A stretch of 63,481 nt of DNA, counting the filler, from Octopus bimaculoides (taxonomy: Eukaryota): the NCBI RefSeq assembly GCF_001194135.2. It is 4 parts of 3 records of this genome, joined end to end, with 100 filler letters (N's around TTAATTAATTAA, not from the genome) between each part and the next. Parts side by side here need not be neighbours in the genome. Positions count along the whole stretch, not along the records: positions 29,135 to 60,087 come from NC_068983.1; 3 more parts are not named here. One strand, written 5' to 3'. Position 1 is the first letter of the stretch; each line of letters opens with the position of its first letter. A model generated the notes under the pieces. That model saw nothing but the letters and a program-made list of their open reading frames with translations, ran no database searches and was not told the DNA's origin. The translations under genes and the position numbers were made by a program. Positions 29,135-59,998 of this stretch are shown in pieces.

Positions 29135-29187
<53 letters not shown>

Positions 29188-30587
29188 TTATATATACACG
29201 TGTGTGTATGCATACATGCACACACACACACATATAAATCAGATTTGTTCATTATTTAACATAGACATTCCACAAAGTCATTATGTTAATGATTTCATTT
29301 AACAAGTCAACAAAGCAAGTTTTTGTAAGAGAGAGAGGGTGGGATTTTAATCAACTGATTTGACACAAATATATTACTGGTATCTATTGACTCCACAGAA
29401 TATAGTTTAATGCCTAAGTCAGATAAAGAAAACGTAGTGCTTTCCCATGATATCAGCATTGCCCCACCCCCACCCAAAACAAGTAGATGGAGGTAAAGAA
29501 AAAAGAGGGGTACACTCCACTTAACAGGCTTCTGCATAGTTTCCACCACCTCAATTTCACTCACAAGACATGAGTCAACTGCTAATGGAGAAAACATTTG
29601 CTGAATGTGCCATGCAGGATGCAACCCAGAACCACAGGATTGTGAAATGAACTTTGTAACTACATGAACAAATGCATGAGTCTAGCCTTCTGGGATTTGA
29701 AATCATAATGTAGAGTTTGGAAATTTATATTGTTTGCTTTACTATTTTTTTGCCAATGTATTGCTTTCAATCTTAGTGATTACATTATTAGTTTTAAACT
29801 TGGGCACAAGGCCAGCAATTTCAGGGAGGGGGTAAGTTGATTACATCAACCCCAGTACTCAACTGTTACTTTATCAATTCCCCAAAGGACAGAAGGTAAA
29901 ATCAACTTCCATGGAAATTAAACTCAGCATGCTAACAATTCTGCCAGCTTGCTACCTTATTGATTACATTATTGATGTAAAATAACAAAAACTGTCAATG
30001 GAGCAAAGAATGAACTGCTATGGAGATGCAGTTTATCGGTTTACCTGAATGAATCTATTTTACTTCATTTATGCAACAAATTTCTTTGAGGGTTAGCTAT
30101 GAATGCTACAATATCCTACTTTCTATCCCATAACAATAGAGAAACTTGTGTCTAAACATTAAAGGGAAAACAATACTAATGACATAAAACAAACAAAAAC
30201 CTTTTAAAAATTGTCTTTGTAAATAGCTCTTTTTATATTATCTAATTCTTTATTGCCCACAAGGGGCTAAACATAGAGGGGACAAACANNNNNNNNNNNN
30301 NNNNNNNNNNNNNNNNNNNNNNNNNNNNNNNNNNNNNNNNNNNNNNNNNNNNNNNNNNNNNNNNNNNNNNNNNNNNNNNNNNNNNNNNNNNNNNNNNNNN
30401 NNNNNNNNNNNNNNNNNNNNNNNNNNNNNNNNNNNNNNNNNNNNNNNNNNNNNNNNNNNNNNNNNNNNNNNNNNNNNNNNNNNNNNNNNNNNNNNNNNNN
30501 NNNNNNNNNNNNNNNNNNNNNNNNNNNNNNNNNNNNNNNNNNNNNNNNNNNNNNNNNNNNNNNNNNNNNNNNNNNNNNNNNNNNNNC

Positions 30588-30810
30588 TTATTTCTTTACT
30601 GCCCACAAGGGGCTAAACATAGAGGGGACAAACAGGAGATTTAGTCGATTACATCGACCCCAGTGCGTAACTGGTACTAAATTTATCGACCCTGAAAGGA
30701 TGAAAGGTAAAGTCGACCCCAGCGGAATTTGAACTCAGAATGTAGCGGCAGACGAAATACCGCTAAGCATTTCGCCCGGCGTGCTAACGTTTCTGCCAGC
30801 TCACCGCTCT
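30588..30810 (-). mobile_element. SINE family A copy, low divergence
   Basis: ttagtcgattacatcgaccccagtgcgtaactggtac...ggaatttgaactcagaatgt...cgtgctaacgtttctgccagctcaccgc. Confidence 0.85.
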
Positions 30811-32304
30811 TTTTATATTATTAATTAATACATTTATGTGTATATGTGTATGTGTGTGTGAGTGTGCATGCATGTGTGTGCATGTGCACACATGTCTCTG
30901 TGTGTGAAGTTCAATGAAATTATGAAAAGTTTCTTTGGAAAATTGGGGAATTCAGAACCCCATAATGTGTATATGGTACTTTTTTTTACTTCTTGTTATT
31001 CTATAAAATTCCTCCACTAAAATTTCATTAACAGTAGCCACATTCCTTACTTACACGTATATTTTACATATGATACTGAAGCCATGCATATACCACATGC
31101 TTTCACACCTGAATTGATGAAAGTATTATTTCTGCATATAACGATTGACACATTTTCTAGTGTTTTAGTGGAAACTAATCAAATCTTGACATTCATATTT
31201 CAATACATGTCTATAAGTGCTACTAACAGCTTCATATGTTGAGAAATATCTAAAAAATATTCATCAGGCACAAACCACATATCATATGGTGCCTTCTCAG
31301 ATTTTTCACGTTCCTTCTTATTCAATATTTTTTTAGTTCATTACATGTGTTGGGTTTTTAAATAAATACTATATGTGTATGTATGTTTACACACAGACAC
31401 ACACACACACACACACNNNNNNNNNNNNNNNNNNNNNNNNNNNNNNNNNNNNNNNNNNNNNNNNNNNNNNNNNNNNNNNNNNNNNNNNNNNNNNNNNNNN
31501 NNNNNNNNNNNNNNNNGTGTGTGTGTATATATATATATACCCATACATACCATTTAATCTAACTATATACTCTATATATATGTGCATACACACACACATT
31601 TATACATATAAATATACATTTATATGTGTGTGATAGATAGATATACATATATACACATATATTTAGATATATTAATACACACACATACATATGTATGTGT
31701 ATATGTTTGTGTACATATATATGTATGTTAAAGATGCCTTTTTAAAATCTCAATTAGGCATTGAGTATAATATAATTAAGGAAAATACTCAATACATTAT
31801 AGATGCAGAGTCAATATTTCTTGTAATAATTAACATGATACCAAACAATAGTACAAATATTTCTGCATATTCTTGTACCTGGTTAAAAAGACACACAGAG
31901 AAATACACACGCATACACAAACATATGTTGAAACACACACACACAAACATATATACAGTTTTAGGAATGTATGTCTGTGCATGCATGTAATATATGAGTG
32001 CATTAGACAAAATAAATCTATGTATGCATGTGTGCATTTGCATGTATGTAATAAGACTACTTTTCCAATAATTCAAATATTTACCTGTATAATTTTTATG
32101 ACAGGTTTCGCAAAATTATGTTATTGAAAAATTGGCTTGCTTCATTTTTTTTCTCATGAGAATCATTCAAACAATGGACACAATGTGTGTCTGTGTGAAA
32201 GAGAGAGAATATATTTACATGGATAAATTATTATACAGTAATACTATTAAATATCTATTAAAATTATATATGTCTGCACATATATGTCTGCATATATGTG
32301 TGTG

Positions 32305-32345
<41 letters not shown>

Positions 32346-32365
32346 GTGTGTGTGTATATAATATT

Positions 32366-32619
32366 GTACCTGGGGAGAGTCATCCTCTTTTAGTACCGCA
32401 TTAATTGACACACTCACTGGTTCGAATTCCACTCATTTACTTATTTATCCTTTCTAAAATTTACACTTTGTCTTGCAACCTCTTTAACAGTCAACTATTG
32501 AGGGGCTTGCAAGATACAACGAAAGTTTTAGAGAAAATAAATAAGTAAATGACAGAAAATAGAACCGGTGAGTATGTGAAGTAATAAGGCACTAAAAGAG
32601 AATGACTCTCTCCAGACAC
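32366..32619. mobile_element. Palindromic (fold-back) MITE, ~255 bp
   Basis: ctggggagagtcatcctcttttagtacc...catttacttatttat...ctaaaa...tcttgcaacc matches the reverse complement of cttgcaaga...ttttaga...ataaataagtaaatg...ggcactaaaagagaatgactctctccag. The arms pair over nearly the whole length. Confidence 0.8.
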
Positions 32620-32731
32620 ACCAAAATATATCCAACACATGAATTCACATACAGATTTTTTGCAACCAAATACAAAAACAATATATATATAACATGTATA
32701 TAAAATATATATAATATATATATATATATAC

Positions 32732-32763
<32 letters not shown>

Positions 32764-32771
32764 ACATATAC

Positions 32772-32807
<36 letters not shown>

Positions 32808-33850
32808 NNNNNNNNNNNNNNNNNNNNNNNNNNNNNNNNNNNNNNNNNNNNNNNNNNNNNNNNNNNNNNNNNNNNNNNNNNNNNNNNNNNNNNNNNNNNN
32901 NNNNNNNNNNNNNNNNNNNNNNNNNNNNNNNNNNNNNNNNNNNNNNNNNNNNNNNNNNNNNNNNNNNNNNNNNNNNNNNNNNNNNNNNNNNNNNNNNNNN
33001 NNNNNNNNNNNNNNNNNNNNNNNNNNNNNNNNNNNNNNNNNNNNNNNNNNNNNNNNNNNNNNNNNNNNNNNNNNNNNNNNNNNNNNNNNNNNNNNNNNNN
33101 NNNNNNNNNNNNNNNNNNNNNNNNNNNNNNNNNNNNNNNNNNNNNNNNNNNNNNNNNNNNNNNNNNNNNNNNNNNNNNNNNNNNNNNNNNNNNNNNNNNN
33201 NNNNNNNNNNNNNNNNNNNNNNNNNNNNNNNNNNNNNNNNNNNNNNNNNNNNNNNNNNNNNNNNNNNNNNNNNNNNNNNNNNNNNNNNNNNNNNNNNNNN
33301 NNNNNNNNNNNNNNNNNNNNNNNNNNNNNNNNNNNNNNNNNNNNNNNNNNNNNNNNNNNNNNNNNNTATATATATATATATATATTACATAAATGAAATG
33401 CATGATGACTCTTCATTTTTACTGGCACCAACTAATTTTCCTCATTAAGACTTGGAAATGACAGTGTTACCATACATTTCATTTGAATGAAATAGTTAGA
33501 CTCTACATCTCTATTGAGTTTTCAGACAGAATGACAGTGATTTTAAGGCTCCTTAGAAACACTCACACCTTGCCGTGTGTGTATGTAGGTGTGTAGTGTG
33601 TATGTGTGTGTGTATGGATATATAGGTATAGGTATAGACATATAGATATAGATATAGGGATTCAATTCTGCTCCTCAGTGTTTCAATCTTTCCTATCCTT
33701 GCATATTTTTGCTTGAAATCTGGCTGACACTTCTTTCTGTCAGAGTTCATCAGCTACGAATCTAAGAAACCCTATGTGCTAAATATTTTTGTTGTAATTC
33801 TGCTTCATTTTTTGTTTGGAGCACTTTATATATATATATATATATATATA

Positions 33851-34533
33851 TGAGATCTGATCAATAAGTATCCGGACTGTTGCCATAGTAATGAAGTTAA
33901 AACATGCTGAGTGAAGCTGCCTGGCATGCGCTCTAAGTTTCAATGTGTCTGCTCCCTTATGCTGTTTTCAGCAGTGCTTGGAAGGAAGGTGTGTAACATG
34001 TGATCATCACATTGACCATGATAAAGTTGTCATGGCAATACCTCCTCAGAGGCCTGCACAAAGTTTCAGATAGTGTATGGAGAGGAGTGTATGAGCTGCA
34101 CACAACTGGTTCAGATACTTCCAAGACAGCCGAAAAAATTTCAATATTGTCGAACATTCTGGGAGACCAGCAACCAGCAGAACTGAGAAAAACATCACAG
34201 ATATGCATGCACAAGATCTCCTTGATTGTGTCAAGAACAATGAAAACTTTTTGAAAACTTCATGTAGGCTTCTGAGCAGGTATCACCAAGCTTTTGGCAA
34301 AATTTGATACAGATTCTCTGCTCAACTGTTTCTGTTACAGTCAACGTAATGATCACATGCTATACACGTTCCTTACAAGCACTGCTGTAAACAGCAGAAG
34401 TAAGCTAGAACATTAAAACTTAGTGCACATGCACAACAGAGTTCAAGGTCAATCTGTGCCAAGCCGCTTCACTCTCCATGCTTTAGCTTTGTTACTATAG
34501 CAACAGTCCAGATACTTATTGATTTCAGTCTCT
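33851..34533. mobile_element. Mariner-derived fold-back element made of two convergent 5' halves
   Basis: Terminal repeat gatcaataagtatccggactgttgccatagt versus actatagcaacagtccagatacttattgat. Both arms continue into transposase N-terminal remnants: VEQRICIKFCQKLGDTCSEAY on minus, and KFQIVYGEECMSCTQ and EHSGRPATSRTEKNI on plus. Confidence 0.85.
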
Positions 34534-34971
34534 GGACTCCATACTAGGACACCATCTTCAAAGGTTTTTGTGAATCATAAAAAGCCCAGTACTTGTTTTT
34601 CTTTCTGCTCTTTATGTCAAATTTTGTTTCTTGTTGATTGCTAAGTTACTGGTAATAAAGGGATATAACTCAGACAACACCGGGTTTTAGACCGCTGTAT
34701 AATATGCACATACACACCCATGCATGCATACATACATACACACACATATACACATACCTATATACGTAAACATATATATATATATATATATATATATCAT
34801 ATGTACGTATATAGCAGCCTTCAACTAAATTCGCCTCTTAAAGCGTTAGTCAACTCGAGGCTGTAGTAAACCATGCAGTTGGATTGAACCCACAACTACT
34901 TGGTTGTGAAGCACAGCCATTCTTATATATATAACGTATGTATATATCTATAAGTGTGTGTTTGTGTGTGA

Positions 34972-35010
<39 letters not shown>

Positions 35011-35231
35011 AACACATACATGTACGTGCGTGCACACACACACACACACACACTCTCTCTCTCTTACACAGTCATAAGCACATGCATACACACATATTAA
35101 ACATATATGAATCTATATATGAATACATATATGTCTGTACTTTTCTCTTGACTGGAATAATAATTATAATAATAACAATAATAATCTATGTAGGTATTAT
35201 ATATATTTCATATGACTGTAATCAGTAATGA

Positions 35232-35431
35232 TTAAGACATCTGCATGTGATATTTCTGGCATTGGTTATTCCAATTTGGTTGATGTCCATTGCTTGGATG
35301 GTGACGGCATTCTCCATTATTCACAGTTTGAGGATTCACAGGTGACAATGAAATTTCTGACAGCAAGCCAGGTATTAAAGACTCCTTATTGTTCTGGACT
35401 TTTAAAGGTGCCATCTGCTTCTGGTTGTAGC
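35232..35431 (-). CDS. Candidate terminal coding exon of the p75NTR-like gene: (C)YNQKQMAPLKVQNNKESLIPGLLSEISLSPVNPQTVNNGECRHHPSNGHQPNWNNQCQKYHMQMS*
   Basis: Acceptor taatttttctttattacag|GC. The phase-1 junction with exon 37602-37841 (T+GC=Cys) is in frame with the supplied ORF 35232-35414. No strong GT donor precedes the TAA. Unique, non-repeat sequence. Confidence 0.62.
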
Positions 35432-35480
35432 CTGTAATAAAGAAAAATTAAGAAAAATAATTAAAATATATGCATATATA

Positions 35481-35890
35481 GGCGCAGGAGTGGCTGTATT
35501 GTAAGTAGCTTGCTTACCAACCACATGGTTCCGGGTTCAGTCCCATTGCGTGGCACCTTGGGCAAGTGTCTTCTACTATAGCCTCGGGCCGACCAAAGCC
35601 TTGTGAGTGGATTTGGTAGACGGAAACTGAAAGAAGCCCATTGTATATATGTATATATATATATGTGTGCGTGTGTGTGTGTGTTCGTGTGTCTGTGTTT
35701 GTCCCCCCACCATCGCTTGACAACCGATGCTGGTGTGTTTACGTCCCCGTAACTTAGCGGTTCAGCAAAAAGGGACCGATAGAATAAGTACTAGGCTTAC
35801 AAAGAATAAGTCCTGGGGTCGATTTTCTCGACTAAAGGCGATGCTCCAGCATGGCCGCAGTCAAATGACTGAAACAAGTAAAAGAGTAAA
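35481..35890 (+). mobile_element. tRNA-derived SINE family B, near full length
   Basis: ggcgcaggagtggctgtattgtaagtagc (A-box-like), ggttccgggttcagtccc (B-box-like), body cgaccaaagccttgtgagtggatttggtagac, tail gactgaaacaagtaaaagag. Further copies at 35920-36080, 40046-40425, 43366-43612 (-), 44552-44955, 45025-45175 and 59790-60000 (-). Confidence 0.85.
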
Positions 35891-37601
35891 AGAGACAGTA
35901 ATGAGTATATACCCAGGTACAGATGTGGTTGTGTAGGTTAAAAAATTTCCTTCCTGATCACATGGTTTCAGGTTCAGCCCCACAGCGTGGTACCTTGGGC
36001 ATTTGTCTTCTACTGTAGCCCTAGACTGACAACAGCTATGAAAATCATTTTGAATAGATAGAAACTAAAAGAAGCCCTGTGTGTGTGTGTGTATGTGTGT
36101 GTGTGTGTGCGCGCGCATACACGCGTGTGCATGTGTTTTGTTTTTCTGTCTTCTTGTTTTGATATTATGTTATAGTTGTAAATGAGTGTCAGTCATACAA
36201 GAAGAATCATTCATTTCCAATATTCTGAAAACACATGTCTGGTTATGGGCAAATATTACTTTGCTTGGAAACATGTTAGAGTTGGTAACAGGAATGGCAT
36301 CCAGCCATAGAAAATCTTCTTCACTGTGCTCCATCCAACCCATGCAAGCATGAAAAAGCGGATGTTAAAATGATGGTGATGTTGACAATGACAACAAAAC
36401 TAGCAATGACAAATGGGTTCAGTATGAAGTAGTACAGCTTAAATAGGTTATTTAGCAAGCACTCATATAGCTAATGTTTCCAAGCAAAGTATATAATTCT
36501 CAGGTGCACTACAGTACATTAGAAGTTACCATCTTTTATCAAAATATTTCTGCACGATTCTAATTACACATATTTAAACTATTCTTCTGTCTTGAACTAT
36601 AAAGAAAATTAAAAAAAAACGTGGAGCCTCAACTCTGACCTGCTAAAAACAGTAACTAACTTCCTTCAAATTCAACTTGGGTAAAATAGACCTGAATATA
36701 CACTGTCTGCAAAAAGATGGGACAGTCACAACTTGATTGCTTTCAATCATATAAATAATAAATAAATGCGCCCTTTTAAAGCCTAGCCAGGCTCATGGGC
36801 CCAGTTTCCCGGTTTCAATGGCGTATGTGTTCCCCAGCTGGACGGGCCGCCAGTCCATCACAGCGTTACTCATTTTTGCCAGCTGAGTGGACTGGAGCAA
36901 CGTGAAATGAAGTGTTTTGCTCAAAAACACAACGCGTCGCCTGGTCCAGGCATCAAAACCACAATCTTACGATCATGATGCTGATACCCTAACCACTAAG
37001 CCACACACCTCCATTTTCAATCATATAGGTCTGCTCAAATCAGCTCTGGCCTGAGACCAAACCACACCAACAACAGAAACAACATAGAGTTTAACTGAAT
37101 ATTTTAACATACCAAGCTTACTTTCTATTTTTGGATAATTAAAAAATATTTAAGTAAGACTTAAAATGTGAATGAAAGACAAAGGAAACTCTTCAAAAGT
37201 GATTCAAAGAATGACTATATAAGAAATAAACTATAGGGAATGGAATGACAATATGTAAATCAAAATAAACAATATATAATAAGCTGTTGAAAGTCAAACG
37301 AAAATCCTAATATAATTTCTAAGCCAAAAGACAAATGTCTATTGATTGCATTTGATATTTTAACCTTTTAAACAGACTTCATCTTGTTACTTTGGCAACT
37401 TCAGATCTTTACATAGTTTTAATGTTACTTCACACATCAACATATAGAAACTAATAAATGCAAAATGATCAGTCATGAGGGAGGGCAGAATTAAATGATT
37501 CATTGCTATTCAAACATAATGCAGCACATGTTAAAAATGTACGCAATGCTAGACTTCAAAAAATATAAAAATGATCGAGTGAAAATGTTTGATCTACTCA
37601 C

Positions 37602-37841
37602 ATGTTTTAATGCCTGAGTCATCATAGACAATACCACTATCTCTTCCAGAAGCTTTAGAATATTCCACATCTTCATGCATAGCATTGTCTCTAGCACCAA
37701 GCCTTTTGTTACGCTGACGTTGGCAGTGTTTATAAATTGCAAAGCCACATAGGCCACATACAACTGCACCAAGCAGGGCACAATAAATTGGAATTACATC
37801 AATGCGCGTTTCTTCATAACGGCTTGCATAACCTTTGCCAG
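37602..37841 (-). CDS. NGFR: Internal exon of a p75 neurotrophin receptor / TNFRSF16-like gene: stalk end, transmembrane helix, juxtamembrane cytoplasmic region
   Basis: Acceptor ttcttattttgcag|CT and donor ACAT|gtgagt; 240 bp, phase 1/1. The peptide GKGYASRYEETRIDVIPIYCALLGAVVCGLCGFAIYKHCQRQRNKRLGARDNAMHEDVEYSKASGRDSGIVYDDSGIKT aligns by eye to human p75 NLIPVYCSILAAVVVGLVAYIAFKRWNSCKQNKQGA...HSDSGISVDS. The symbol denotes likeness; orthology is not proven. Confidence 0.85.
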
Positions 37842-38696
37842 CTGCAAAATAAGAAACCATATTTGAAATATATTTTTCAAACAACCATTATATATATACT
37901 TCTGGATTCAGTCAATAAAAAAATCAAAGAAAGAAAGAAAGCAGGTTTATATACAAGAAATAATAGGGTATGCAATAGATAATAAATAGGAGAGCTACCC
38001 AGTGATAGAAATTAGCCCTTTATGCATGGTCACAGTTCAGATAGATCATTAGAGTGCAGACCTACTGGCAGAAGTGGAAGGTTACTGCCAACACAGTGCT
38101 GTAAAGCCATGAGACTGCCATTGACTAAGTTTATTTTGATGTGAGGCTGCTGTCCCCTTTGAATGGGTTACAGTAGTTTTTCTGAAACAATTACCAAAAA
38201 AAAAAAAAAAAATCTATAAATCTCTCTTAATATGTAAAAATGTTCATGGATATGTTATACAATAATCCATAAGGGCTAAAACACATTTACTGCAAACAAA
38301 ACTGGGATGAAAAGTATCAAATAGTTAAGCTTTTGATTTAACTCTTTAGCTTTCAAACTTGTATATCCAGCTCAGCTATTCTAGCTGTTTTATGTTTAAA
38401 CTGCTAGATCCAATCTTTCACACCTACTCTACAATATCATTCTAAAAATGTACAATTGTGTCATTGGAGTCTTGAAGTTATGAGATAATGTATAATTAAT
38501 TGTAAAAAAATAAGTATAATAAATAAGCTTTACATCCAAAAGGGAATCTGAATGCCAAATGATTAAGTATTTAAAAACATGGGTCTTGGAGAAATATTGA
38601 TTTGCAAAATTGTGTTGAGAAGAGATNNNNNNNNNNATAAGTAAAAAAAGAAAGTTATTCATTTATATATATATATATATATATTGAAGAAGAAGA

Positions 38697-38717
38697 AGAA
38701 GAAGAAGTATGATAATG

Positions 38718-38763
<46 letters not shown>
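38697..38763. repeat. (GAA)n/(ATA)n microsatellites
   Basis: Direct reading. Confidence 0.95.
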
Positions 38764-38764
<1 letters not shown>

Positions 38765-40539
38765 TTGTTTTTTGGTATCTCTTATGATGGATAAGACCAG
38801 GTACATAAATAGCTGGTCAAGCATCTTGTGTGACATTTAGCTTTTCATTTACCAATTCAATACCAGCTGAAATAAAGAGTGATATGGATTTGAAGAGCTT
38901 TGGAGGAAAAACACAAGAAAGTTAAAAAATGTGATCAGATGAGCTACTATACTAAATTAGTTTCAATTCACCACAGAATCTTCTTAACTATTTGACCATG
39001 CTGCTTCTAAATCACACCACAAGTAAAAGAAGTTTGTGGGAGAACATTGATTTCGACTTTAGAGCAATTAATTGATCTGTAAGTTGTATCCATTATCCAT
39101 TTATATTAGGCTTTGTATTTACCTGGAGAAGGCAACTACATCAATTCTCTTTTCTGACTCAGAAGAAGTTACAGCATAGAGCTGTTACTTATCTTTGGTT
39201 TCTGTAGTGATTATGTTGTTGAGAACTGTATTTCTCTCTATAATGGGATGTTTAGTCTATTACAAACAGCTTTTAACATTAAATTTGGTACAACAAACTA
39301 ACAAGTCATAGAAGAGTGCTGAAGTTTGTTTGAAGCATTGCAGAGGGAGAGGGGGAGGGTAGAGAGAGAAAGAGAGAGCATACAGTTATTAGATAACTCT
39401 AGGTCAGTTGTGTCATTTGAGAAAAATTTAGTTGCTATTTCTAGCAGGTTGGCTGACTGTATAGAGACTCCATTGTCGGCTGATATAAGACAGTGCACAA
39501 CAGAGGGCAGCAGGTTAACTGGCAATCACAAGTAAAATTTACAGTTCAGACATTTGTAGAGACCTCATTTTCTGTGTTATTTTAGTGTGTCACCAATGAA
39601 AGATTATTAATCTGTCAGCTACTTTAGCTCTTTAAACAAAAATCAAACTATCTTCTCTCTCTTCTCTCCGCAGCAATGTGTTTAGTTGAATGAGAAATCT
39701 TTTCGGTGATGTCCATTTCTACTATTTTGAAAATGTTTATTACCTTATTTTCTTTTTACTAATAGCTGTTAACAGCTTGTACACATTTGACCTTATAAAC
39801 AAGAAAATACACATGGACACTTTCTACAACATAAATTATTTCACTTGACTTTATGAAACAAGAAAATATGAATGTACATTCTCACAAGACATTGTGCACA
39901 CCTAACTTTATAGCAATATTGAGTATTAATGTATTTTTTAGAGTTGTATTTACAAATCATGTGTTGTATTATTATCAATGAATTATTGTACCAACAAGAC
40001 AGGAAGAGGTCTATACAATTAAAGGGAAAATTATGCATAATATAGGCACAGGTGGGGCTGTGTGGCAGGAAGTTTGCTTCACATACACATGGTTCAGAGT
40101 TCAGTTCCACTGCACAACACCCTGAGTAAGTGTCTTCTCCTACAGCTTCATTCCAAACAAAGCCTTGTGAGGGGATTTAGTAGACAAACTGAAAGATGTG
40201 GATATATATATGTGTATGTATCTTTGAGTTAGTTTGTTTTGCACCACCAGCATTAGTTTGTTTACATCCTCATAATTTAATGATTTGGCAAAAGAGACCT
40301 ATAAAATAAATACCAGACTTTAAAAAAATAAGTACAGGGGGTTGATTTGTTCAACTGAAACCCCTCAAAGTGGTGCCCCAGCATCGCCACAGTCTAATGA
40401 CTGAAACAAGTAAAGGGTAAAAGATAAAAGAATTCATCATTATTGTTATCCCACCAATACTTTGGAAACAGCCTAAATTGAGAAAGACTTGAAAATCAAC
40501 GTAAGATCGTAATGATGTAAAGTAAATATAACAAATAAT

Positions 40540-40715
40540 CCAGAACCCTTGTCTGGTACTGGATCGATCCCAAAATCAATTCAGTTCATGCCAGTCATGG
40601 GGCCAAACATCCCTGAAAGTTTCATCCAAATCCATCCAGCAGTTCTTGAGATATCTTGTCCATGGACAAACAAACATGACTGAAAACAACACTCCCACCT
40701 TTACTAAAACAGAGA
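40540..40715 (+). mobile_element. Possible Helentron-associated (HINE-like) non-autonomous repeat
   Basis: cctgaaagtttcatccaaatccatccagcagttcttgagatatcttg...acaaacaaac...gaaaacaacact resembles the core and microsatellite layout of such elements (recalled, not searched). Confidence 0.4.
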
Positions 40716-41098
40716 TAATAAAGCATATAGAACAATACAGCCACAAAATATACAAAAAAGAACCACAGCATGAACATCTCCAGACAAGACTTTGAAGTGA
40801 TGTGCTCAATTTGAAAGAGAACATAAGTAATAAGTAAGATTGTGTCTGGAATTTGTAGTGTTAAGATACTTTACTGCAAATTAGTGTCTAGATTCTGTAG
40901 AGAACTCTAAGATAAATCAAGACAGTTGATGTTGGGAATTGTAGAATAAAAGTCATGTAGTAATTTAGACAAACAATATATATACTTAACACACATACAT
41001 GCACATATAAAGCAGAAGAAATGAATATTTATTACCAAACCAATATTAGATAATACTCGCAAATAATTTAATTGGAATTATTTTTATTATCATTATTA

Positions 41099-41290
41099 TT
41101 GGTGGTGAGCAAGCAGAATTGTCAGTATGCCAGGCAAAATGCTCAGCAGCATTTCGTCTGTCTTTATGTTCTGAGTTCAAATTTTTCAGGGTTGATAAAA
41201 TAAGTACCAGTTGAGCACTGGGGCTTATGTATTTGACTTACCCCTCCTCTGAATTTGCTGCCTTTGTGCCAAAATTTGAAACCATTATTA
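41099..41290 (+). mobile_element. SINE family A copy
   Basis: ggtggtgagcaagcagaattgtcag...ttctgagttcaaat...gataaaataagtaccagttgagcactggg. Similar copies at 45480-45720 and 54735-54945. Confidence 0.8.
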
Positions 41291-41297
41291 TTATTAG

Positions 41298-41640
41298 TGA
41301 CACTTGTTTACTGATCATGCTTCAAAAATTCTGCGAAGGACTCTTGCAGTTCCAAGCAATGATGATTTTTGTAGTTGTTCTAGCTTTACAGTCATTCCAA
41401 TCTTTTTGAGCCATGTTGGTAGTTGGGCACTGGCATTTCCAAGTGCACTAATCAATATTGGTATCACATCCACTTTCTTCATTGAACACAATCTGCATAT
41501 CCACATAATCTCTGTTCCATATTTTCAAACATTTCCATCTCTTTTCATTCTCTGTTCATTTGTTGTCCGTATCCTCTGATTGATATGCCATTTGCATCCA
41601 CTGGAATGCTCCAATAGTAACACTCCGTAACCATCATGTT
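41298..41640 (-). mobile_element. 3' end of an R4/Dong-type LINE (RLE domain)
   Basis: KKVDVIPILISALGNASAQLPTWLKKIG...LQKSSLLGTARVLRRIFEA*, followed on the minus strand by taataataat. Confidence 0.8.
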
Positions 41641-41809
41641 TACTTGTTTACACCACTCTCATCTCACAGCATGGCTAACAGTTTAAAAACAGTAATTAAA
41701 AAAAATAACTTTAATATTTCCTTAAGAAAAGAATCAAATGTTAAGTGCACCACATTGGAATATATTCCTTTATTTTATGCCACTCAGTCAAGGAGAGTTT
41801 ACCTTGTCT

Positions 41810-42005
41810 TATTTGGTGACGTCACCAGTGCTGGTTCCACATAAAAAGCACCCAGTCCACTTTGTAAAGTGGTTGGCATTAGGAAGGGCATTGAGCTGTA
41901 GAAACCATGCCAAAACAGACAATAGAACTTGGCACAGCCCTCTAGTTTGCCAGCTATTGTCAAACCATCCACCCCATGTCAGCATGGAAAACAGATGTTA
42001 AACAA
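41810..42005 (+). mobile_element. Interspersed repeat family C (SINE-like)
   Basis: gtgctggttccacataaaaagcaccc...ggcattaggaagggcat...agaaaccatgccaaaac...caaaccatcc..cccatg, also at ~44030-44255 and partly at ~36240-36370. Confidence 0.7.
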
Positions 42006-42309
42006 TAACACCTATCCCACTGAAATCTACACTGCTGCCATCGATGTCACCGGAAAAATGTGTCCAGAAAAGGTTGCAATGGTAAACAGTTGAGAAACTC
42101 AACTCAGGAATACATAATTATACATATAATTCAATATATATATATTGTATAAAATTATATGTATAATACAACAGTTATGAAGTATAAAACATTGTACATC
42201 ATAAGTAAAAGATATTATAGATAGGTTTTGTTTGTTTCAATTAGTCATAAGTTATTGAAATTTGTCTGAAAAATATAATTTTCTGACAGAAATTATATAT
42301 ATATATATA

Positions 42310-42500
42310 TATGGGAGAATATACAAATAATAACAACAGACGAGGACAGGTGGTGTAAATAACAAAAGTATATATTAGTATGACGCTCGGGAATACGGAA
42401 AGTCTTTGACGTTTCGAGCTACGCTCTTCAACGGAAAGAATACGGAGACAAGGAGAAAAACACGGAGAAAAAAAATTGAATAGTGTTCAGTCAACGGTCA
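42310..42500 (+). mobile_element. Penelope-like terminal (pLTR/tail) fragment
   Basis: gtctttgacgtttcgagctacgctcttcaac carries the GACGTTTCG..CTCTTCA signature typical of PLE ends; a similar tail occurs at ~50640-50770. Confidence 0.45.
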
Positions 42501-43411
42501 ATCATAATATATATATATATATATATATATCAAATGTATCTGTAGGTATATAAGCATGTGTGTGCATATAACTATATATATATAGAAATGTTTGTGTATA
42601 TATATGTGTGTGTGTATATATGTATAGGTATATATATGTGTGTGTATATATATATATATATGATACACGTATATACATACACACACGCATACGTCTGTTT
42701 ATATATTTTAGATTAGTTTGATTTTTTCACGCAACAAAACATCTCATCTCACTGTAATTTCAAAAGTGCACACCTTTCACTATAATTATATTTTAGAATA
42801 TCTTGGCTTTGGAAATTTTTTCACACGTGTATATAAAAAAAAAAAAAAACATGCGTGTTTGTGTGTGTGAGTATGCATGTTTATATTTTATACATATGTA
42901 TATCCATGCATATGTGTGACTGTATACATGTGTGTGTGTGTGTGTGTGTGTGTGCATGTGCATGAGTATAGATAGGTATATGTAAATTTATATATTACAG
43001 ATACACAGATGGATAGATATTTACACATAGAAATATATTTATCTTTATAAATATATATATATATATATATATATACATCTCTTAATCCTTTTTGCTCCAT
43101 GTGGAGCATAGGGCCTCAACAGTTATTTTCCACTTTTTGTGGTCATTGGCGTGTTTCTTGGCTGCTTTCCCATGTCAGGCCGGTGGTCCTGAGCTCATCC
43201 AAAATACTCCGCTTCCATATCTGTTTTGGGCGTCCTCGCTTCCTTTTCCCCTGCGGGTTCCAGTCAGGTGCATGTCATGTCACATTTGAGGGTTCTTTCC
43301 ACAGTGTGTGTCCAATCCATCTCCATTTCCTTTGTCTAATCTGAACATGTATCAGCTCATTGGTTGTCAAGTGATGTTGGGGGGGACAAACACAGACACA
43401 CAAACATACAC

Positions 43412-43448
<37 letters not shown>

Positions 43449-44252
43449 CGACAGGCTTTTTTCAGTTTCCGTCTACCAAATCCACTCAAAAGGCTTTGGT
43501 CGGCCCGAGGCTATAGTAAAAGACACTTGCCCAACGTGCCACGCAGTGGGACTGAACCCAGAACCATGTGGTTGGTAAGTAAGCTACTTACCACACAGCC
43601 ACTCTTGTGCCTATAAACATATATGTGTATATACATTTAAATAAAGATGTATTATTACCGTTATTAATGATATTAATAAGGTAACAATAAGATGGCTAAA
43701 TTAATACCACTTGCTAAAATCAGAGCCAAGACTTCGAAACCACGAGAAACTCACTATAAACATACACATGAGCAATGCAATGAACATATGAGAAATAGGT
43801 TTACCTTTGCGCTGAATACATTAGTAAGTAAAGTACATTTCAATACCAATTGACTTCACCCTCTGTATGACCAACATACTGTGGGATCTTCAGTTGAAAA
43901 TAACATTTTAATATCTATTTCTAAAATATTCACTACATTAGCTCGTGTACATTCCTTGCTTAAAACACACACACACACAGACATAGGCTCATCCTTTGCA
44001 ACCCTTTCAAGTTGAGCATCCCTAATGTGGGGTTGTGCTGGTGCTGGTGCTGGTGCTGGTGCCACGTAAAAAGCACCTGTGCTAGTGCTGCTTTAAAGCA
44101 CCCAGGATATTCTGTAATGTGGCTGGTATTAGGAAGGGCATCCAGCCATAGAAACCATGCAAAAACAGACATGGTCCCTGAACAGCCCTTCAGCTGGTCG
44201 GCTCTTGTCAAACCATCCAACCCATGCCTACATGGGAAATGGATGTTAAATC

Positions 44253-44254
<2 letters not shown>

Positions 44255-44299
<45 letters not shown>

Positions 44300-44321
44300 G
44301 GTGATGGTGGTGATAATGATG

Positions 44322-44392
<71 letters not shown>
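44255..44392. repeat. Compound (GAT)n(GGT)n(GT)n microsatellite
   Basis: Direct reading. Confidence 0.97.
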
Positions 44393-44393
<1 letters not shown>

Positions 44394-46529
44394 CAAATGT
44401 CTAATCATTATGTGAATTCACATAAAAATATTGTTATAAATGATGTTTATGATCTCACTGATAAGATTTTTAAAACTGTTACAGAAAGAGCAAAAAAATG
44501 AGTATAGGCATAATTAATGATTTAATTAAGCAAATAATTTAGAAATAATAAGCATGGCTGTGTGGTAAGAAGCTCGCTTCCCAACCACATGGTTCCAGGT
44601 TCACTACCACAGTGCCACCTCAGACAAGTGCTTTCTACTATAGCTTCGGGCTGACAAAAGACCAAAGCCTTGTGAGTGGATTTGGTAGGTAGAAACTCAA
44701 AGAAGCCCATCACAGACACACACACACACACATATATATATTTGTGTGTGTGTCTATGTTTGTCTTCCACCACTGCTTGACAACTAGTGTTGGTGTGCTT
44801 ACATCCCCCATAACATAGGAGTTCAGCAAAAGAGGCTGATAAAATAAGTACCAGGCTTAAAGAATAAAAAGTACTGGGATTGATTCATTCGACTAAAATT
44901 CCTCAAGGCAGTGCCCCAGCATGGCCACGGCCTAATAACTGAAACAAGTAAAAGAATAAGAAAATTGAAATATCTCTTTGTTTTGTTTTAAATATATTTT
45001 TTTAAATATTGGTATACATGCATGCCTGGATGGTTCAGAAGCATGCTTCGCAACCATGTGGTCTAGGGTTCAGTCCCACTGACTGGCATCTTGGTTAAGT
45101 GTCTTCCACTATAGCCCCAGGCCAACCAAAGCCTTGAGTGGATTTGCTAGACAAAAACTGAAAGAAGCTTGTTGTGCATGCGTATGCATGTGTGCATGTA
45201 CATCTGTGTATGCATGCACGCATGTGGGTGAGTGTGTATAATTGTCAAAACTCTGGATTTTTGTGGATTTCAAGTCAATGAGGAAACATCTACCTAGTTG
45301 CTCAATGTGCTAGAAATTGCAATCAAATGTCTCTAGAATCACTTCTTAACAATTTACAAGATTTTCTCTTGTAGTTCTATTCAGTCAAGGCTGATCTGGG
45401 ACTAAAGGTTATGTTAAACTTTTCATAAGTAGAAAGAAGTTTTTTATGTTAACATTTAGATGATATGTAAAGAAAGATTAAGGTAGCACAAGCTAGCAGA
45501 ATCATTAGTGTACTGGGTAAAATGTTTAGTGGCATTTCATCAGTTTTTATTTTCTGAGTTAAATTCCACCTGAGTCAACTTTGCCTTTCATCCTTTCAGG
45601 GTTGATAAAATAAGTACCAGTGAAACACCGGAATCAATAAAATAAGTACAAGTTGGGCATTGATGTAATTGTCTTACCCTTCCCTGAAATTGCTGGCCTT
45701 GTGCCAAAATTTGAAACCAATATGTAAAGAAAGATTTGAATTCCTAATCAGTGAGTCAAATTGTTGATTGCTTTCAATGAAACAGAATTTATTTATTTAT
45801 TTATCTATTTATTTATTTATTTGTTTGTTTAGCAATTTTAGTTAAGTAAAATAGATGCCAATGATGTTGGGGAATGTTGTCTGCAGCACTGAATGGATTA
45901 CGATTTTACATAGAAAGGGAGTTATCTTTTACCTCCTAGACAGAATATTATGAAATCTGAAGCTAAGCACTTGCCTTATGAGTCCTAGTGGACATGGAGA
46001 AGAGGACTTCACTAGGAAATATTTACTTTAATTTACCAACAGAATAGAGCAAAATATTACACTACTAAATGTTATCTTCCATCATTTCTGGCATCTCCTT
46101 TCCAATGAAATGCATATATGGAGATTGGTTTGATCTTTTTGACCTTCAAACATTCTGATGATCAAATGATTGACTTTTGTAGCAATCAATCGCATAAAAC
46201 CTTATACATTACATATAATACATAAAAGCCTACCCTATGTCATTGTTACAATACATCACACATCATTTATAACAACCACCAACGACCAACACTCACACCA
46301 CTGTTGACCTTCAACAACAATAATGTGCAACACATCTTCCTCTATCACCATAATATCCCTACACTTGATCAATCACCCCCACTCATAACATATCACTTAA
46401 TATAACAACCTATCATGTTATTCTACCTTAATACATCATTCTTTACCACCACACAAAACCACCCCATCCTACATCAATAAAATACACCACCACTGTATAT
46501 ATCGCCCTCTATTACCACTGTGACAATGA

Positions 46530-46725
46530 GCAAATGTTGTTTAATCTACTGAAATAGTTGCTAAATATCCTTCAAATTACTTCTTACTGTTTTATGTAAA
46601 ATAACAGTGGTCCTATATGTAAGAAATAGACAAGATGGTCATGCCTGGAATTCCTTTGATCGTGAGTCTACTTGGTCAGAGCTGATCTGGGACTGAACAT
46701 CAGTAACAACTTCAACAACAACAAC
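46530..46725 (+). mobile_element. Interspersed repeat family E with an (AAC)n tail
   Basis: gaaatagttgctaaat...caagatggtcatgcctggaat...gctgatctgggact...aacaacaac. Diverged copies at ~45290-45410, 49050-49145, 49865-50025, 57870-58030, 39385-39460 (-) and 16230-16330. Confidence 0.55.
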
Positions 46726-49700
46726 TGTGTTATCTGCTACCAGATATCACATTTTATTAAACCAACACATGCTTCTTATACCATGTTAAATTCCACATAT
46801 TCTCATCTGCAACTACATCAATCTTCCATTACATCCTCCACTGTAAGAACCTATATCAACCGGACACCTATCCACCAACAAAACATTAGAAAAGGAAAAC
46901 ACAACAAGCAGAATAAAGTACGAGTCTCAACACTAATTCAAAATTGAAAAAGTACAACAAATGAACTAGCAACGAGGCTTGAACTGACCTAATAATAGCC
47001 ACCTTAATCATTTTACCAATTATATCACATAGTATTTACATTCTTTTCTCACAGATATTTCGCAAAAGAAGGGAGTGCAATCTTAATGGGGGTTTAATCG
47101 GTGACAAAGTTATCCAGCGATTTTTGCTGTTCTTTATTCAATCTCAGTTTGGTGTTTGCAAAAATATAAGGTTTAATATTGTTAACAGACATACATATTA
47201 ACACTTTTTCTCTCCCTCCCTATGATGATGATGATGATGGTAGGGATTCAAACTTATGTACCCATTAATGTATAAACAAGGCCTCCACAACAAAACAACA
47301 CACTTTGTATCAACACAAAAGCACAATGACTTCAGATAAACCATCATCATTTATGTCAGAAGACCACTTTCTTTTCCTTTTCTTTTTAAGTAAGGACACA
47401 TGGTGGATGGAAAAGGTCTGAGGAGAGGAGTTTCATGTCAGATTGGGAAGCTTTGATGGAACCAAACTCTTTTTAATGAATTAGAGCAATTGAGCAACAC
47501 CAATATAGTCATGTCCAGAGATGACAGACTTATAAGCACCCACCACACTAATAAAGATCATACCAACATGACACAATACAGCTTGAAAGTGAAACGAATA
47601 GCAAATACAATATTCATAAAAGTCTTAGATATCACCCACAACATCCTTTTGGGATTATATAAGACCTTCAGAAAGACTATTAGCTTCCTCCTGGACCTAG
47701 TTATACACTAAAACACCATCAGGCATATCCTAAATGGAACAAGCAATTGAATACACTGAGCTGGGACAATGCAACTCTTTTCAAAGCAGCAGATCATTAC
47801 ATATAACCAGGCATAATGAGCTGTGAACACAAAGAGGTAATGAATAATTTATAAGAACAGGAAGGTGAATACAGTCTAGTTTAATGCACCATTCAATACA
47901 GTGTATTTGTATATGTAGCAAAGTAGTTCCTCTCTTCAGTAAGTAAGCTCTTGTTCAGAACATCAGAAACTACTCAATAAATAAAGTTTTCCATAAATAA
48001 AAATAACTTCAAGGTCACTTACAGAAGTCTTCAAGATTCCTGCATAACAGAAAATTGCTTTATGCTAAAATATGAACAAATATAATAATTTAAAGGGAAA
48101 ATCTGTCTTGTACATCAGTTTAATAAAGAGCCCATTTAAGAACTGTTTTTGCCAACACAACAGTTCCTTCAAACAATGCTCCATAATAAATAATATATCT
48201 AATCTCAAAACACATATGCAAAATTAAGGACAAAGGAAAGAACAGCACAATTACATAAATTCTGGACATAACAGCTTCTTCAAGATAGACAAAGAAATAC
48301 AAAATCTGTTTAGTGAGGAAATTTCCAACCTCCTTAGACAGAATATCAAAATTGATATCTTTTTGCTCTAATGACAATGCAGAAGCTTGTGTCAATGAAC
48401 CTGCTCTCTTTAACAAGTGTAGCCAGCTCCTTACTTGCATTCAAATTTGAATTTGATGAAGTCAGTAAAACACTTAACACTTATGGAGAAAATAGTTTAA
48501 ACCTAAAAACAAAACAGTAACTTGACATAAGTTGCATAGCTCTGAATTTATATTATTAAACATTCATTATTTTTCTCAGCACAAATGCACTTTCACAGGT
48601 TATAATGCAATTGCAATTAGCCCATGATGCTAAAAAAAAATAATAATAAAACAGGTTTTCCAACTCTTGTTCTACATTGTTGATGATCTGCCAGAAGGAG
48701 TAACCAAATCCTCTTCAAATCACGACCTAACATCTTATTAAAAAGAAAGTGACATGGTATAATGTTTGGGGTATAATGTTTGGGATGTTTTGGACATCCT
48801 AGCGATTAGGATGTCACACTCATAATCACAAGATTGTGGTTTCAATTCCTGAACTGAGTGGTGTATTGTGTTCTTGAATAGAACTCTTCCTTTCATGTAG
48901 CTTCAGTTCACTCAGCTGTAAATAAGTAACCTCCATGACCGGTATCCCATTTAGGGAGAATGTTGGGATCTCAGAAACTTATACAACAGAGTAACTGGGT
49001 AATCTGGTGTATGAGTCCTAGGACTCAAGACAGCACTTACTATATACACCATGTAAAGAAAAAAAGACAAGATGGGCATGGCTGGAATACTTTTGATCAC
49101 AGGTTTACTGAAAAGAAGCTGATTTGGGGTTAAACAATAAACATTATTATTAATCAACCAATGCTGATTCATAGACAGATTATATCCAGCTAATGTTATA
49201 TATATCACATGACCAATAGCTCATACATAATTTCCATTTCTCTTCTTATGTCTACTTGAAGCTGAAATAGAAATAGCAATTGAGAGTAAGTAGCTTGGAT
49301 CCACTCAGACAGAGCTGCAGCAAACCATGGTATGGGATTTCTACGCATAATTATATGTACACAAACACATTAAACACCATACCTTTTGGAAATATTAATT
49401 TGAGACTGATCTCGATTTATTAACTGCCTAATTAGATGTTATGTAAATACATCTGAAGAAAAAGCTTTATTTTCTTTTCTTTTTTTTTTTGGCTTCCAAT
49501 ATCATGAAAGATATTGGAAAATGTGAAATACAGACATAATATATACTAATATAAATTCTTTGTGTATGTACGTCACCAAATAAATACAGAATCAAACGTG
49601 AGAGAATATAAAGAGAAATAAGAGTATTAGATGCACACATACATGTGCATGCACACACACATGGGCATGCACGCACGCACGCGTGCACACACACACACAC

Positions 49701-51716
49701 AGCCAACCACAAAGCAGGGTCTGAATGAGGATCAAAGATGGCAACAGAGTTGAAAGAAAGAGAGCAAAGTAAAAGAAGAGATTATTGTTTGCTAAATCAG
49801 TTATGGTTGGATACTAGTATTATCAGTAGTTGTCAATACTGGAAATTTTGTTGAACCAACGAAGGAGCCTCTACTTGCCATTTAACCTGCTAGAAATAGC
49901 AGCTAATTCTGCAAATACACTTTACCATGTTGGACAATAATGGACTCATTGGATTATGTGATCCTAGAGGGAAGATTTGCCTTCAAATAAAGAGAGGATG
50001 GTCATAGCTAGAATGCCTGTGAGTGAAACTTAGTAGATGAAAACTGTGTGGAAGTCCATTGGATGCAGTGTACCCATAATTCAAATGGCTCAGTGTGTTA
50101 CATGTGGAGGCACATGGCTTAGTGGTTAAGGTGTTGGACTCATGATCATAAGATTGTAGTTTTGATTTCAGGACTAGGTAATGCATTGTGTTCTTGAGCA
50201 AAACACTTCATTTCACATTGCTCCAGTCCAGTCAGCTGGTAAAAACAAGTAATCCTGCAACAGACCAGCATCCCGTCCTGGGAGGAATATATATGCCTGA
50301 GAAATTGGCCCTATGCTCCTTACAGAGTAATGTGGACTAACTATTGTGTCATATACTGTATCATACTGATTTTGTTTGAATGCTGCATAGAGTACTCAAC
50401 CACTTGTTTATTTTTTAGACAGCAGGAATGGTAGTGCCAGACGGTAGCATTGTCTATCACTGAATGGCACCCATCATTAAATAAAGCACACCAAATCTAA
50501 CAGAAGCTGGTGTATCCATGAGAAGATTTCACTGCAACATCTAATGTAATGCCTGTGAAATAATGTCAAACTCCTCAAGTCAGAATAGTATAGTGTTGTT
50601 ACAATACAGTTAGTACAGTTATGTATACTGTTTATATTAGTCAAACTGGTATCTTCAACTTGATTGTTGATTTCACTACAATTTGGTTGTTGTATAACTC
50701 CAGCCTTCTTCAGGTGTCTTGTGTCAGTAACAATCAAGATGAGGACACCAGTCCAACTAATAGAAACGGTGTACATAATAAAAATTCCTGATCCCAGAAA
50801 TATACAGGGTGTCCACAAGGTCTGGGTACGTGGAGTAAATAAAATCATAACATAAACAATTAAATATAAGAAATAATAATTTCTTAAAGTATGTGTTAAT
50901 CCCCATGTACCTAGACTTTGTGGACTCCCTGTAGAATAGCACTGATGTTATTGAAGTTGTTTAACCCCAGGTCAGTCCTGCTTGAGAAGAGCTAACATTC
51001 ATGTTATGACTATCTAGTTTTTATCACCATGCCCACCACCACCACCACCACTGGCCAATTTAGTGTATCTAGGACTACATTATCCAAGTTATAAGGTCAT
51101 AGACAAAAAATTCTTAATTAAATAGTCATATTCATTACAGAAAAGGTACAAAAAATGCAGCAGCAACAATGAGCAACTCTCAAAGAAAGGGGAGATAATT
51201 CAGAAACTAAGAATTAATCCATCAGTTATTTTACATGTTTAGGGAAAAGCTTGAGCTTAGTTTACAGGGCCTCCAAGGCTGACAAGAGGGAAGGAAGGAG
51301 AAAGGTATCTTCAAGCTGGAGACCTGCTTATAACAAGGGTACCCAACATGTCAGACTGGACAACAGATTAATTTGATCACCCAAATAGGCCATAGTGGGA
51401 TTTGCAGAAAGCAAGTAAGTCAAATAAATGCTGCAAAGTATCCAGTCCAAAGGTCCATATGTTCCGTAAATCCACAAACCTGGATCAGTGTTTTTTTTGT
51501 ATCAAATGCCAACTGGATGAAAGGCAAAGTTGACCTTGGCAAGATTTGAAATCTGAGCATAGAGAATCAAAACAAATACCACAAGGTATTTTATCTGACA
51601 CTCTTCCAATCTTCAGAATTCAATGTTAATTCATTGAGTAGGGTACAGGATTAATTGAACACTGAATAGTCATAAATGAAACAGATGGATATGCATGCAT
51701 CTGCATACACACACAC

Positions 51717-51767
<51 letters not shown>

Positions 51768-52134
51768 GAAATAAACTCCCAGATTTGAAGTAAGTTTGCT
51801 GAGCACAAAACTGTTGGCCTTTGAGTCACTTTTGTAACTTTCTGCCAATTAAAGATAATATAAAAAGGCATATATACTCACGTATACCTTCTATTTCTGA
51901 AGTTGCCCTATCATACCTTTATTTTGTTGCCAACATACTGAACACTATCATTTTTGTTTTATTTTTTGCTTTTTTTAATACATACATACATACATACATA
52001 TATATACACACTCACATGCATGCACACACATATAAAATGCACTTTAATTGAAATAAAGTTTCCCCAAAATTAGACATCTAATATAATAAATTTGAATGTC
52101 AGTGTGTCACACTTTTTCAACTTTAATAAATCCT

Positions 52135-52340
52135 TTCTACTGGAAGCACAAGGCCTCAAATTTGGGGGAAAGGGATTAAGTTGATTACATTGACCTCAAT
52201 TCATAACTGGTACTAATTTTTTCGACCCCATGAAAGGCAAAATCAACCTTGGTGGAATTTGAGCTCAAAACCTAATGGCAGACAAAATACCGCTAAGCAT
52301 TTCACCCAGCGTGCTAACAATTTTGCCACCTCACCACCTT
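52135..52340 (-). mobile_element. SINE family A copy flanked by a ~45-bp direct duplication
   Basis: SINE body as in the other copies; flanking repeats at 52081-52125 and 52354-52398. Confidence 0.75.
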
Positions 52341-52454
52341 AATATATCATAATATATAATAAATGTCAATGTCAATGTGTCACACGTCTTCAATTTTACT
52401 CCTAGAGGCCGTAGCCCAACATATCATAACATTTTGGAATCAAGCTGACACCAC

Positions 52455-56272: not shown

Positions 56273-56408
<136 letters not shown>

Positions 56409-56802: not shown

Positions 56803-56835
<33 letters not shown>

Positions 56836-58624: not shown

Positions 58625-58699
58625 TTCTAAACAATAGCGTACACCTTATCGTCATCATGGCATTTACACTTACCACGTTGTAATCATAACAATACAGTT

Positions 58700-59967: not shown

Positions 59968-59998
<31 letters not shown>

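Follow-up and report, generated by a model that had tools for sequence, protein, structure and literature searches.

p75NTR (TNFRSF16) of Octopus bimaculoides probably has its last coding exon at 35431..35232, on the minus strand of the window (the whole stretch of 63,481 nucleotides of DNA analysed here), and octopods are likely to have swapped the death domain of this receptor for a constrained, disordered tail. The octopod protein predicted from the genome keeps the four-repeat ectodomain, the p75-specific transmembrane (TM) helix, including the conserved Cys and a small-residue motif, and the juxtamembrane motif. The two death-domain exons of bivalves and gastropods are replaced in the octopod gene models by one exon, which encodes a tail of about 60-66 residues. 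The preliminary description of this DNA had suggested a death-domain-less cephalopod variant of p75. The gene models of four octopod species specify such a protein, with purifying selection on the tail, so the suggestion is supported for Octopoda (Octopus and Argonauta) rather than for cephalopods at large.

Gene structure in the window

The part of the window that was analysed (29135-60087, with the gene on the minus strand) is AT-rich, with about 35% G+C, and laden with microsatellites. The TM exon (37841..37602, minus strand; peptide AGKGYASRYEETRIDVIPIYCALLGAVVCGLCGFAIYKHCQRQRNKRLGARDNAMHEDVEYSKASGRDSGIVYDDSGIKT) encodes a short stalk, the p75-type TM helix VIPIYCALLGAVVCGL and the juxtamembrane motif HEDVEYSKASGRDSGI. 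It both starts and ends in phase 1. Its acceptor cag lies at 37844-37842, and its donor is CAT/GTGAGT with the GT at 37601-37600; on the minus strand, the GTGAGT (37596..37601) scores +5.0 with a crude donor matrix. The intron that follows (35432..37601, minus strand) measures 2,170 nt, compared with 1,088 nt at the homologous position in Argonauta, and contains a SINE-like repeat at 35463-35893 and a partial second copy at 35959-36107. It ends in a pyrimidine-rich tract and acceptor, ttaattatttttcttaatttttctttattacag (35432..35465, minus strand), with the cag at 35434-35432.

The tail exon (35235..35431, minus strand) comprises 65 full codons and two bases of a split Cys codon. The TM exon is joined to it in phase 1 at this codon (T/GC), and the joined frame reads CYNQKQMAPLKVQNNKESLIPGLLSEISLSPVNPQTVNNGECRHHPSNGHQPNWNNQCQKYHMQMS, that is 66 codons followed by a TAA stop at 35234-35232 (minus strand). 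The product is rich in N, Q, H, S and P. In Argonauta, the stop is found six codons earlier. The exon at 35232-35431 and its peptide, as given in the preliminary description, were exact to the coordinate and the frame.

The region 3' of the stop (29135..35231, minus strand), which comprises the 3' UTR and sequence further downstream, is interrupted by three N gaps, contains numerous microsatellites, and is conserved with Argonauta only in repeats. There are four N gaps in the analysed piece, at 30289-30586, 31417-31516, 32808-33366 and 38627-38636. The second and third are flanked by CA/TG or TA-type microsatellites, which fits a short-read draft that breaks at simple repeats. An exon could be concealed among the 957 N that lie 3' of the tail exon.

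Upstream of the TM exon, the intron (37842..60087, minus strand) extends over at least 22 kb. The corresponding intron of Argonauta is about 70 kb long, and the O. vulgaris gene spans about 146 kb. The CRD exon, with all four repeats, lies outside the analysed piece. A search of the piece for CRD exons with a cysteine-pattern regular expression and tblastn returned microsatellite artefacts only, and residues 1-177 of the 323-aa Octopus model (P0002) had no tblastn match in it.

Identity of the receptor

The assignment to p75NTR, already made in the preliminary description, is borne out by several comparisons. The TM exon matches the Pfam family TNFR_16_TM (PF18422) with 28.4 bits, above the cut-off of 25.6, and the octopus TM segment can be aligned to the p75NTR TM helices in PDB entries 2mic and 5zgg and to that of NRADD in 6hj7 (E = 0.002). 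The complete Octopus model (P0002) contains four TNFR_c6 stretches (98.1 bits). Its top PDB matches are the p75NTR ectodomains 3buk, 1sg1 and 3ij2 (E of about 1e-20 to 1e-21), which come slightly ahead of OPG.

In an alignment of nine mollusc sequences, residues D192, P195, Y197, C198, L201, V204, G207 and L208 of the TM region are invariant, as are H233, E237, Y238, S239, A241, S242, D245, S246 and G247 of the juxtamembrane region. The mollusc-wide juxtamembrane motif H-x-x-V-E-Y-S-x-A-S-x-x-D-S-G is thus retained in octopods, and its DSGI part is also present in human p75. A TRAF6-like P-x-E-x-x-E motif in this region was considered and rejected, since the Pro is not conserved even among bivalves. 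The exon plan points in the same direction as the protein comparisons. The Argonauta gene consists of signal, all-CRD, TM and tail exons, and the first three of these recur in the Mytilus and Patella genes, where the TM exon is followed by a phase-1 intron at the equivalent position.

Conservation of the tail exon

Taken alone, the 66-codon open frame does not exceed what chance would give. Stops make up 5.9% of codons on the minus strand, so that the probability of 66 open codons is about 0.019 per site, and 13 of the 363 in-phase AG sites 3' of the TM exon open at least 60 codons. The tail exon rises above chance because it is conserved between species.

Conservation is seen first among the public protein models. 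An HMMER search with the TM-plus-tail query against 1.84 billion representatives gave one full-length match, the 323-aa P0002, which is identical to the query in 146 of 146 residues and has the same ...YHMQMS end. The 90% cluster of this protein consists of O. vulgaris CAI9719777.1, O. bimaculoides XP_052822182.1 and O. sinensis XP_029634100.1; its sole Logan member (P0033) is a genomic exon-2 contig. The three Octopus models are each 323 aa long, are present as a single isoform, and are named TNFRSF16 or TNFRSF16-like. They differ at a few ectodomain positions and nowhere in the TM exon or tail, and the tail deduced from the window is 100% identical to the C-termini of the public Octopus models P0002, P0029 and P0030. 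The TNFRSF16-like protein of Argonauta hians (P0051, 324 aa) is 83% identical, with the same junction and a homologous tail, and its precomputed Pfam annotation lists TNFR_c6 and TNFR_16_TM only. The four octopod models are predictions that are possibly not independent of each other.

The comparison of genomic DNA is independent of annotation. The Argonauta hians locus used for this purpose (L001) has 95,412 nt, with the gene at 10001-85412, and includes 10 kb 3' of the stop. Its exons are located at 10001-10051 (the first), in an all-CRD exon of about 0.5 kb, at 83900-84139 (TM) and at 85228-85412 (tail). When the minus strand of Octopus from 40000 to 29135 was compared to this locus with blastn, just two non-repeat matches were obtained. 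The first, with 77% identity, covers the TM exon and about 165 nt of intron flank; the TM exon itself has about 90% nucleotide identity to 83900-84139 of the Argonauta locus. The second match is the tail exon, with 82.6% nucleotide identity between 35437-35251 and Argonauta 85222-85411. At the amino acid level, the two tails are 77% identical. The DNA similarity begins 6 nt before the acceptor and is lost right after the Argonauta stop, the acceptor CAG/G is kept, and the sole indel of the alignment has a length of 3 nt. A tblastx comparison of the downstream regions detected the tail exon only, apart from low-complexity and SINE noise, and the other frames contain stops.

The substitutions in the tail exon follow the pattern of a coding sequence. 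By the Nei-Gojobori method, there are 15.5 synonymous differences at 34.5 sites and 14.5 non-synonymous differences at 145.5 sites, which corresponds to a dS of 0.685, a dN of 0.107 and an omega of 0.16, compared with an omega of 0.25 for the TM exon. The binomial probability of the synonymous excess is about 1e-4. Exon-bounded DNA similarity, an in-frame indel and a low omega together mark the tail as a constrained coding exon. By these measures, the tail exon is protein-coding and has been under purifying selection since at least the split of Octopus and Argonauta.

The results leave next to no room for the reading that an accidental open stretch was chained to the TM exon by gene predictors. 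The frequency of long frames at in-phase AG sites, the SINE-like repeat that ends 30 nt upstream of the acceptor, and the possible cross-projection of gene models between related species would all be in line with such an artefact. However, the tail exon is unique within the piece, and it is conserved in Argonauta while the surrounding intron is unalignable. The in-frame indel, the low omega and the conserved acceptor are DNA-level observations that do not depend on gene models. The artefact reading is, on these comparisons, largely refuted.

Two features of the alignment go beyond the exon boundaries and the protein sequence. Within the tail exon, Octopus and Argonauta share a 25-nt block at 35341-35365 (minus strand), TCAGAAATTTCATTGTCACCTGTGA, without a single difference, even at third codon positions. 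Coding constraint alone would not demand this degree of identity, and the block may function as an enhancer of splicing or as some other element at the RNA level. In addition, the first approximately 165 nt of the intron after the TM exon (37438-37601, minus strand) can be aligned to 84140-84329 of the Argonauta locus, and the first 16 are identical. In both species, read-through of the TM-exon donor adds two codons (..TCE and a stop), so that intron retention would cut the receptor after the juxtamembrane motif.

Absence of a death domain

The Pfam Death family scores 42-58 bits in six bivalve or gastropod orthologues (from Pinctada, Ruditapes, Mytilus, Patella and Crassostrea, and a Logan-derived gastropod-like protein), whereas neither the Octopus (P0002) nor the Argonauta (P0051) protein has a match at E values up to 1. 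This comparison thus separates the tested bivalves and gastropods from the two octopods. At the genomic level, the Pfam scan of the three minus-strand frames of 29135-37900 returned the TM family only and no Death match. In tblastn searches of the piece with ten mollusc homologues, only the TM exon was found, plus the tail in the case of P0002. We also built an HMM of the mollusc p75 intracellular region from 11 bivalve and gastropod p75 proteins and ran it with the --max option on ORFs of 12 aa or more in all six frames, both for the piece and for the complete Argonauta locus of 95 kb. The best E value was 1, and there was no death-domain match. A search of the protein database with a death-domain profile yielded no cephalopod match, which is a weak result since the word index is incomplete. 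The six-helix cytoplasmic death domain that characterizes death receptors was therefore not found in the octopod protein.

The earlier claim that no death domain is present is in agreement with the Pfam, HMM and tblastn results for 29135-37900. It had been made for positions 1 to 37600; nothing was found there, but the genomic sequence of this gene region in that range is confined to 29135-37600, about 8.5 kb with 957 N.

AlphaFold2 models the ectodomain and TM helix confidently, and residues 230-323 have a pLDDT of 25-40 and no secondary structure, with a shallow alignment of 5 sequences as input. The octopod tail is accordingly predicted to be intrinsically disordered. It contains two conserved blocks, NNKESL(I/L)PGLLSEISLSPV and HPSN(G/A)HQPNWNNQ, and has no detectable homologue beyond octopods. 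The C-termini are ...HMQMS in Octopus and ...NQWQK in Argonauta, and HVV, NIV, QMV, NMV or QVV in mollusc relatives. A conserved hydrophobic C-terminal tripeptide, SPV in vertebrates and x-V/I-V in molluscs, is hence absent in both octopods, as had been noted earlier for a class I PDZ terminus. That the last residues are not conserved between the two (QMS and WQK) argues against a PDZ-type ligand.

A death domain might nonetheless be encoded by a second isoform that skips the tail exon, or uses a cryptic donor within it, and reaches distant death-domain exons. In this case, octopods would make both truncated and full-length p75. The ancestral mollusc gene does have two death-domain exons, and the searches reached only about 6 kb beyond the stop in the window (957 N included) and 10 kb beyond it in Argonauta, in a gene of about 146 kb (O. 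vulgaris) with introns of up to about 70 kb. Moreover, the identical 25-nt block ends at a weak GTGA site. However, a single isoform without a death domain is annotated per species in four of four species, and neither the Argonauta 95-kb locus nor its 10 kb downstream gave a death-domain signal. The GT sites inside the tail exon all score -0.4 bits or less with the crude matrix, in keeping with the earlier remark that the exon has no strong internal donor, and the two best would give phase 0, unlike the split-codon donor of the ancestral exon 4 (phase 1 or 2). Finally, the strong purifying selection on the tail continues up to the stop codon region. An alternative last exon is in our opinion unlikely.

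It is also conceivable that the gene is a lineage-specific duplicate, and that a p75 orthologue with a death domain is present elsewhere in octopod genomes. Insect Wengen and Grindelwald, death-domain-less relatives from the p75 lineage, illustrate that such genes occur, and protein searches of the kind made here differ from a whole-genome scan. Yet the exhaustive HMMER search with TM and juxtamembrane sequence found one cephalopod cluster, the other named matches being bivalves, gastropods and a fish contaminant, and the cephalopods in the full-protein search were the Octopus and Argonauta clusters only. The exon plan and the intron phases equal those of the single-copy Mytilus and Patella genes. 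A hidden second orthologue is for these reasons very improbable, and replacement of the death domain in the octopod p75NTR gene itself is the preferred reading.

Origin of the tail

Five exons are common to the genes of Mytilus (L002) and Patella (L003), a plan that can be taken as ancestral for molluscs. Exons 1-3 encode the signal peptide, all four repeats, and the stalk with the TM and juxtamembrane regions. Exon 4 encodes a linker and helix 1 of the death domain and ends with ...ELG in a split Gly codon, so that its donor is in phase 1 or 2. Exon 5 encodes the remainder of the death domain. Single-exon read-through fragments from other molluscs stop at the same two boundaries. In Lottia gigantea, the protein model XP_009045809.1 (P0007, 176 aa) joins the TM exon straight to exon 5, without the exon 4 that is present in Patella (P0017). 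Either the annotation is wrong here, or the model represents an isoform that skips exon 4 and whose death domain is broken.

In octopods, the tail exon comes directly after the phase-1 intron that follows the TM exon, and hence takes the place of exon 4. It may be a diverged exon 4 that is read through to a new stop after the loss of its donor and of exon 5. Sequence homology was tried as a direct argument and abandoned, since the octopod tails reach no higher score with an HMM of exon 4 than 5,000 shuffled versions do; the full intracellular HMM matches the tail with E = 28. The tail begins with CYNQKQ, which resembles (Q)YNQLSRVRDLP of Mytilus, and YNQ also occurs in exon 4 of Pinctada and Crassostrea, but the similarity is not significant. 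The tail may thus be either a diverged exon 4 or a newly recruited exon, with position and phase only in favour of the former. Exonisation of a SINE was rejected as the source, because the repeat stops at 35463, the exon occurs once only in the piece, and the Argonauta exon does not have this repeat beside it.

Comparison with other receptors and possible function

Orthologues of p75NTR have been described in a mollusc, an annelid and Daphnia (Wilson 2009, PMC2772990). The death domain, the defining signalling module of p75NTR, is stressed in the invertebrate proteins, namely those of Lottia, Capitella and Daphnia and the 'PITA' descendants, and is reported to be conserved from cnidarians to mammals (PMC2772990; bioRxiv 10.1101/2021.12.26.474206). 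Wengen and Grindelwald are known exceptions without a death domain, and are said to derive from a p75-like ancestor (bioRxiv 10.1101/2021.12.26.474206). The octopod protein resembles canonical p75NTR in its four repeats, the TM helix with Cys, the juxtamembrane DSGI, and the exon plan of Mytilus and Patella. It differs in the absence of the death domain and of a hydrophobic PDZ-type end, and in the octopod-specific tail of about 60-66 residues that follows the juxtamembrane motif. The Drosophila proteins provide a precedent for protostome death-domain loss from an ancestral p75-like receptor. However, most cysteine-rich repeats and the p75-type TM signature have disappeared from the insect receptors as well. 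In octopods, the four repeats, the TM helix and the juxtamembrane motif are kept almost intact, so that, unlike in insects, only the death-domain module is gone. NRADD (NRH2), a vertebrate paralogue of p75, shares the p75-type TM helix, but is truncated in the opposite way: it has no cysteine-rich ectodomain and keeps the death domain.

Truncated receptors of other families offer an analogy, not a homology. TrkB.T1, TrkC.T1 and TRAIL-R4 (DcR2), the last with a truncated death domain, serve as ligand sinks, as dominant-negative partners or as weak independent signallers, and the tail of TrkB.T1 is short and highly conserved. As in octopod p75, they keep the ligand-binding and TM parts and have a short tail in place of the signalling module. 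Unlike octopod p75, for which the truncated form is the only annotated product, these proteins coexist with a full-length receptor.

In vertebrate p75, the parts that octopods retain mediate ligand binding, dimer signalling that depends on the TM Cys, and juxtamembrane interactions, and the death domain binds RhoGDI, RIP2 and similar partners. The octopod receptor could still bind ligand, dimerise and meet partners through its ectodomain, TM helix and juxtamembrane region, but would be devoid of death-domain contacts of the RhoGDI or RIP2 type. It would then act as a co-receptor or as a ligand sink or modulator, or signal via the juxtamembrane motif and the new tail. More tentatively, and with considerable doubt on our part, octopods and possibly all coleoids may have permanently lost the death domain from their only p75NTR-type receptor, with the tail serving as a new docking or signalling module. 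If so, the most complex nervous system among invertebrates would carry out its neurotrophin-receptor signalling with no death-domain pathway at all.

In our full-text literature search, we found no paper that deals with a p75 receptor of cephalopods or with the death domain of such a receptor. Its loss in octopods thus appears to be undescribed, in line with the preliminary description, which had singled it out as a candidate for undescribed biology; the exon and the protein as such are already contained in RefSeq, GenBank and UniProt. The database label 'TNFRSF16' carries a risk in this context, since p75 functions in apoptosis or RhoA signalling that are transferred to octopus by name would mislead. 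Octopod p75 can also be regarded as a natural experiment on which p75 functions need no death domain, in a lineage of special interest for nervous-system evolution. Candidates for such functions are co-receptor roles, juxtamembrane signalling and regulated cleavage.

Other elements in the analysed piece

A long low-complexity tract of CAT, CAC and ACC repeats extends from 53600 to 54500. On either strand, several of its frames contain ORFs of 146-209 aa with a high content of His/Tyr, Thr, Val or Gly/Ser; these ORFs are almost certainly not genes.

The SINE-like repeat of the intron between the TM and tail exons belongs to a family of about 270-430 nt that is common to Octopus and Argonauta, with copies that are 69-90% identical. 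Apart from the two intronic copies, it is found in the window at 40027-40424, 43358-43624, 44555-44959, 45037-45168 and 59887-60012, and in the Argonauta locus at 5790-5886, 38056-38153 and 88673-88764. On the plus strand, a B-box-like GGTTCCGGGTTCAGTCCC motif is present in the head of the repeat, but ARAGORN and Rfam searches of the piece called nothing, the SINE-like repeat included, and so did not confirm a derivation of the repeat from a tRNA. At about 43100-43300 on the minus strand, there is an ORF fragment, HAPDWNPQGKRKRGRPKQIWKRSILDELRTTGLTWESSQETRQ, which we take to resemble the C-terminal end of ORF2 of a non-LTR retrotransposon.
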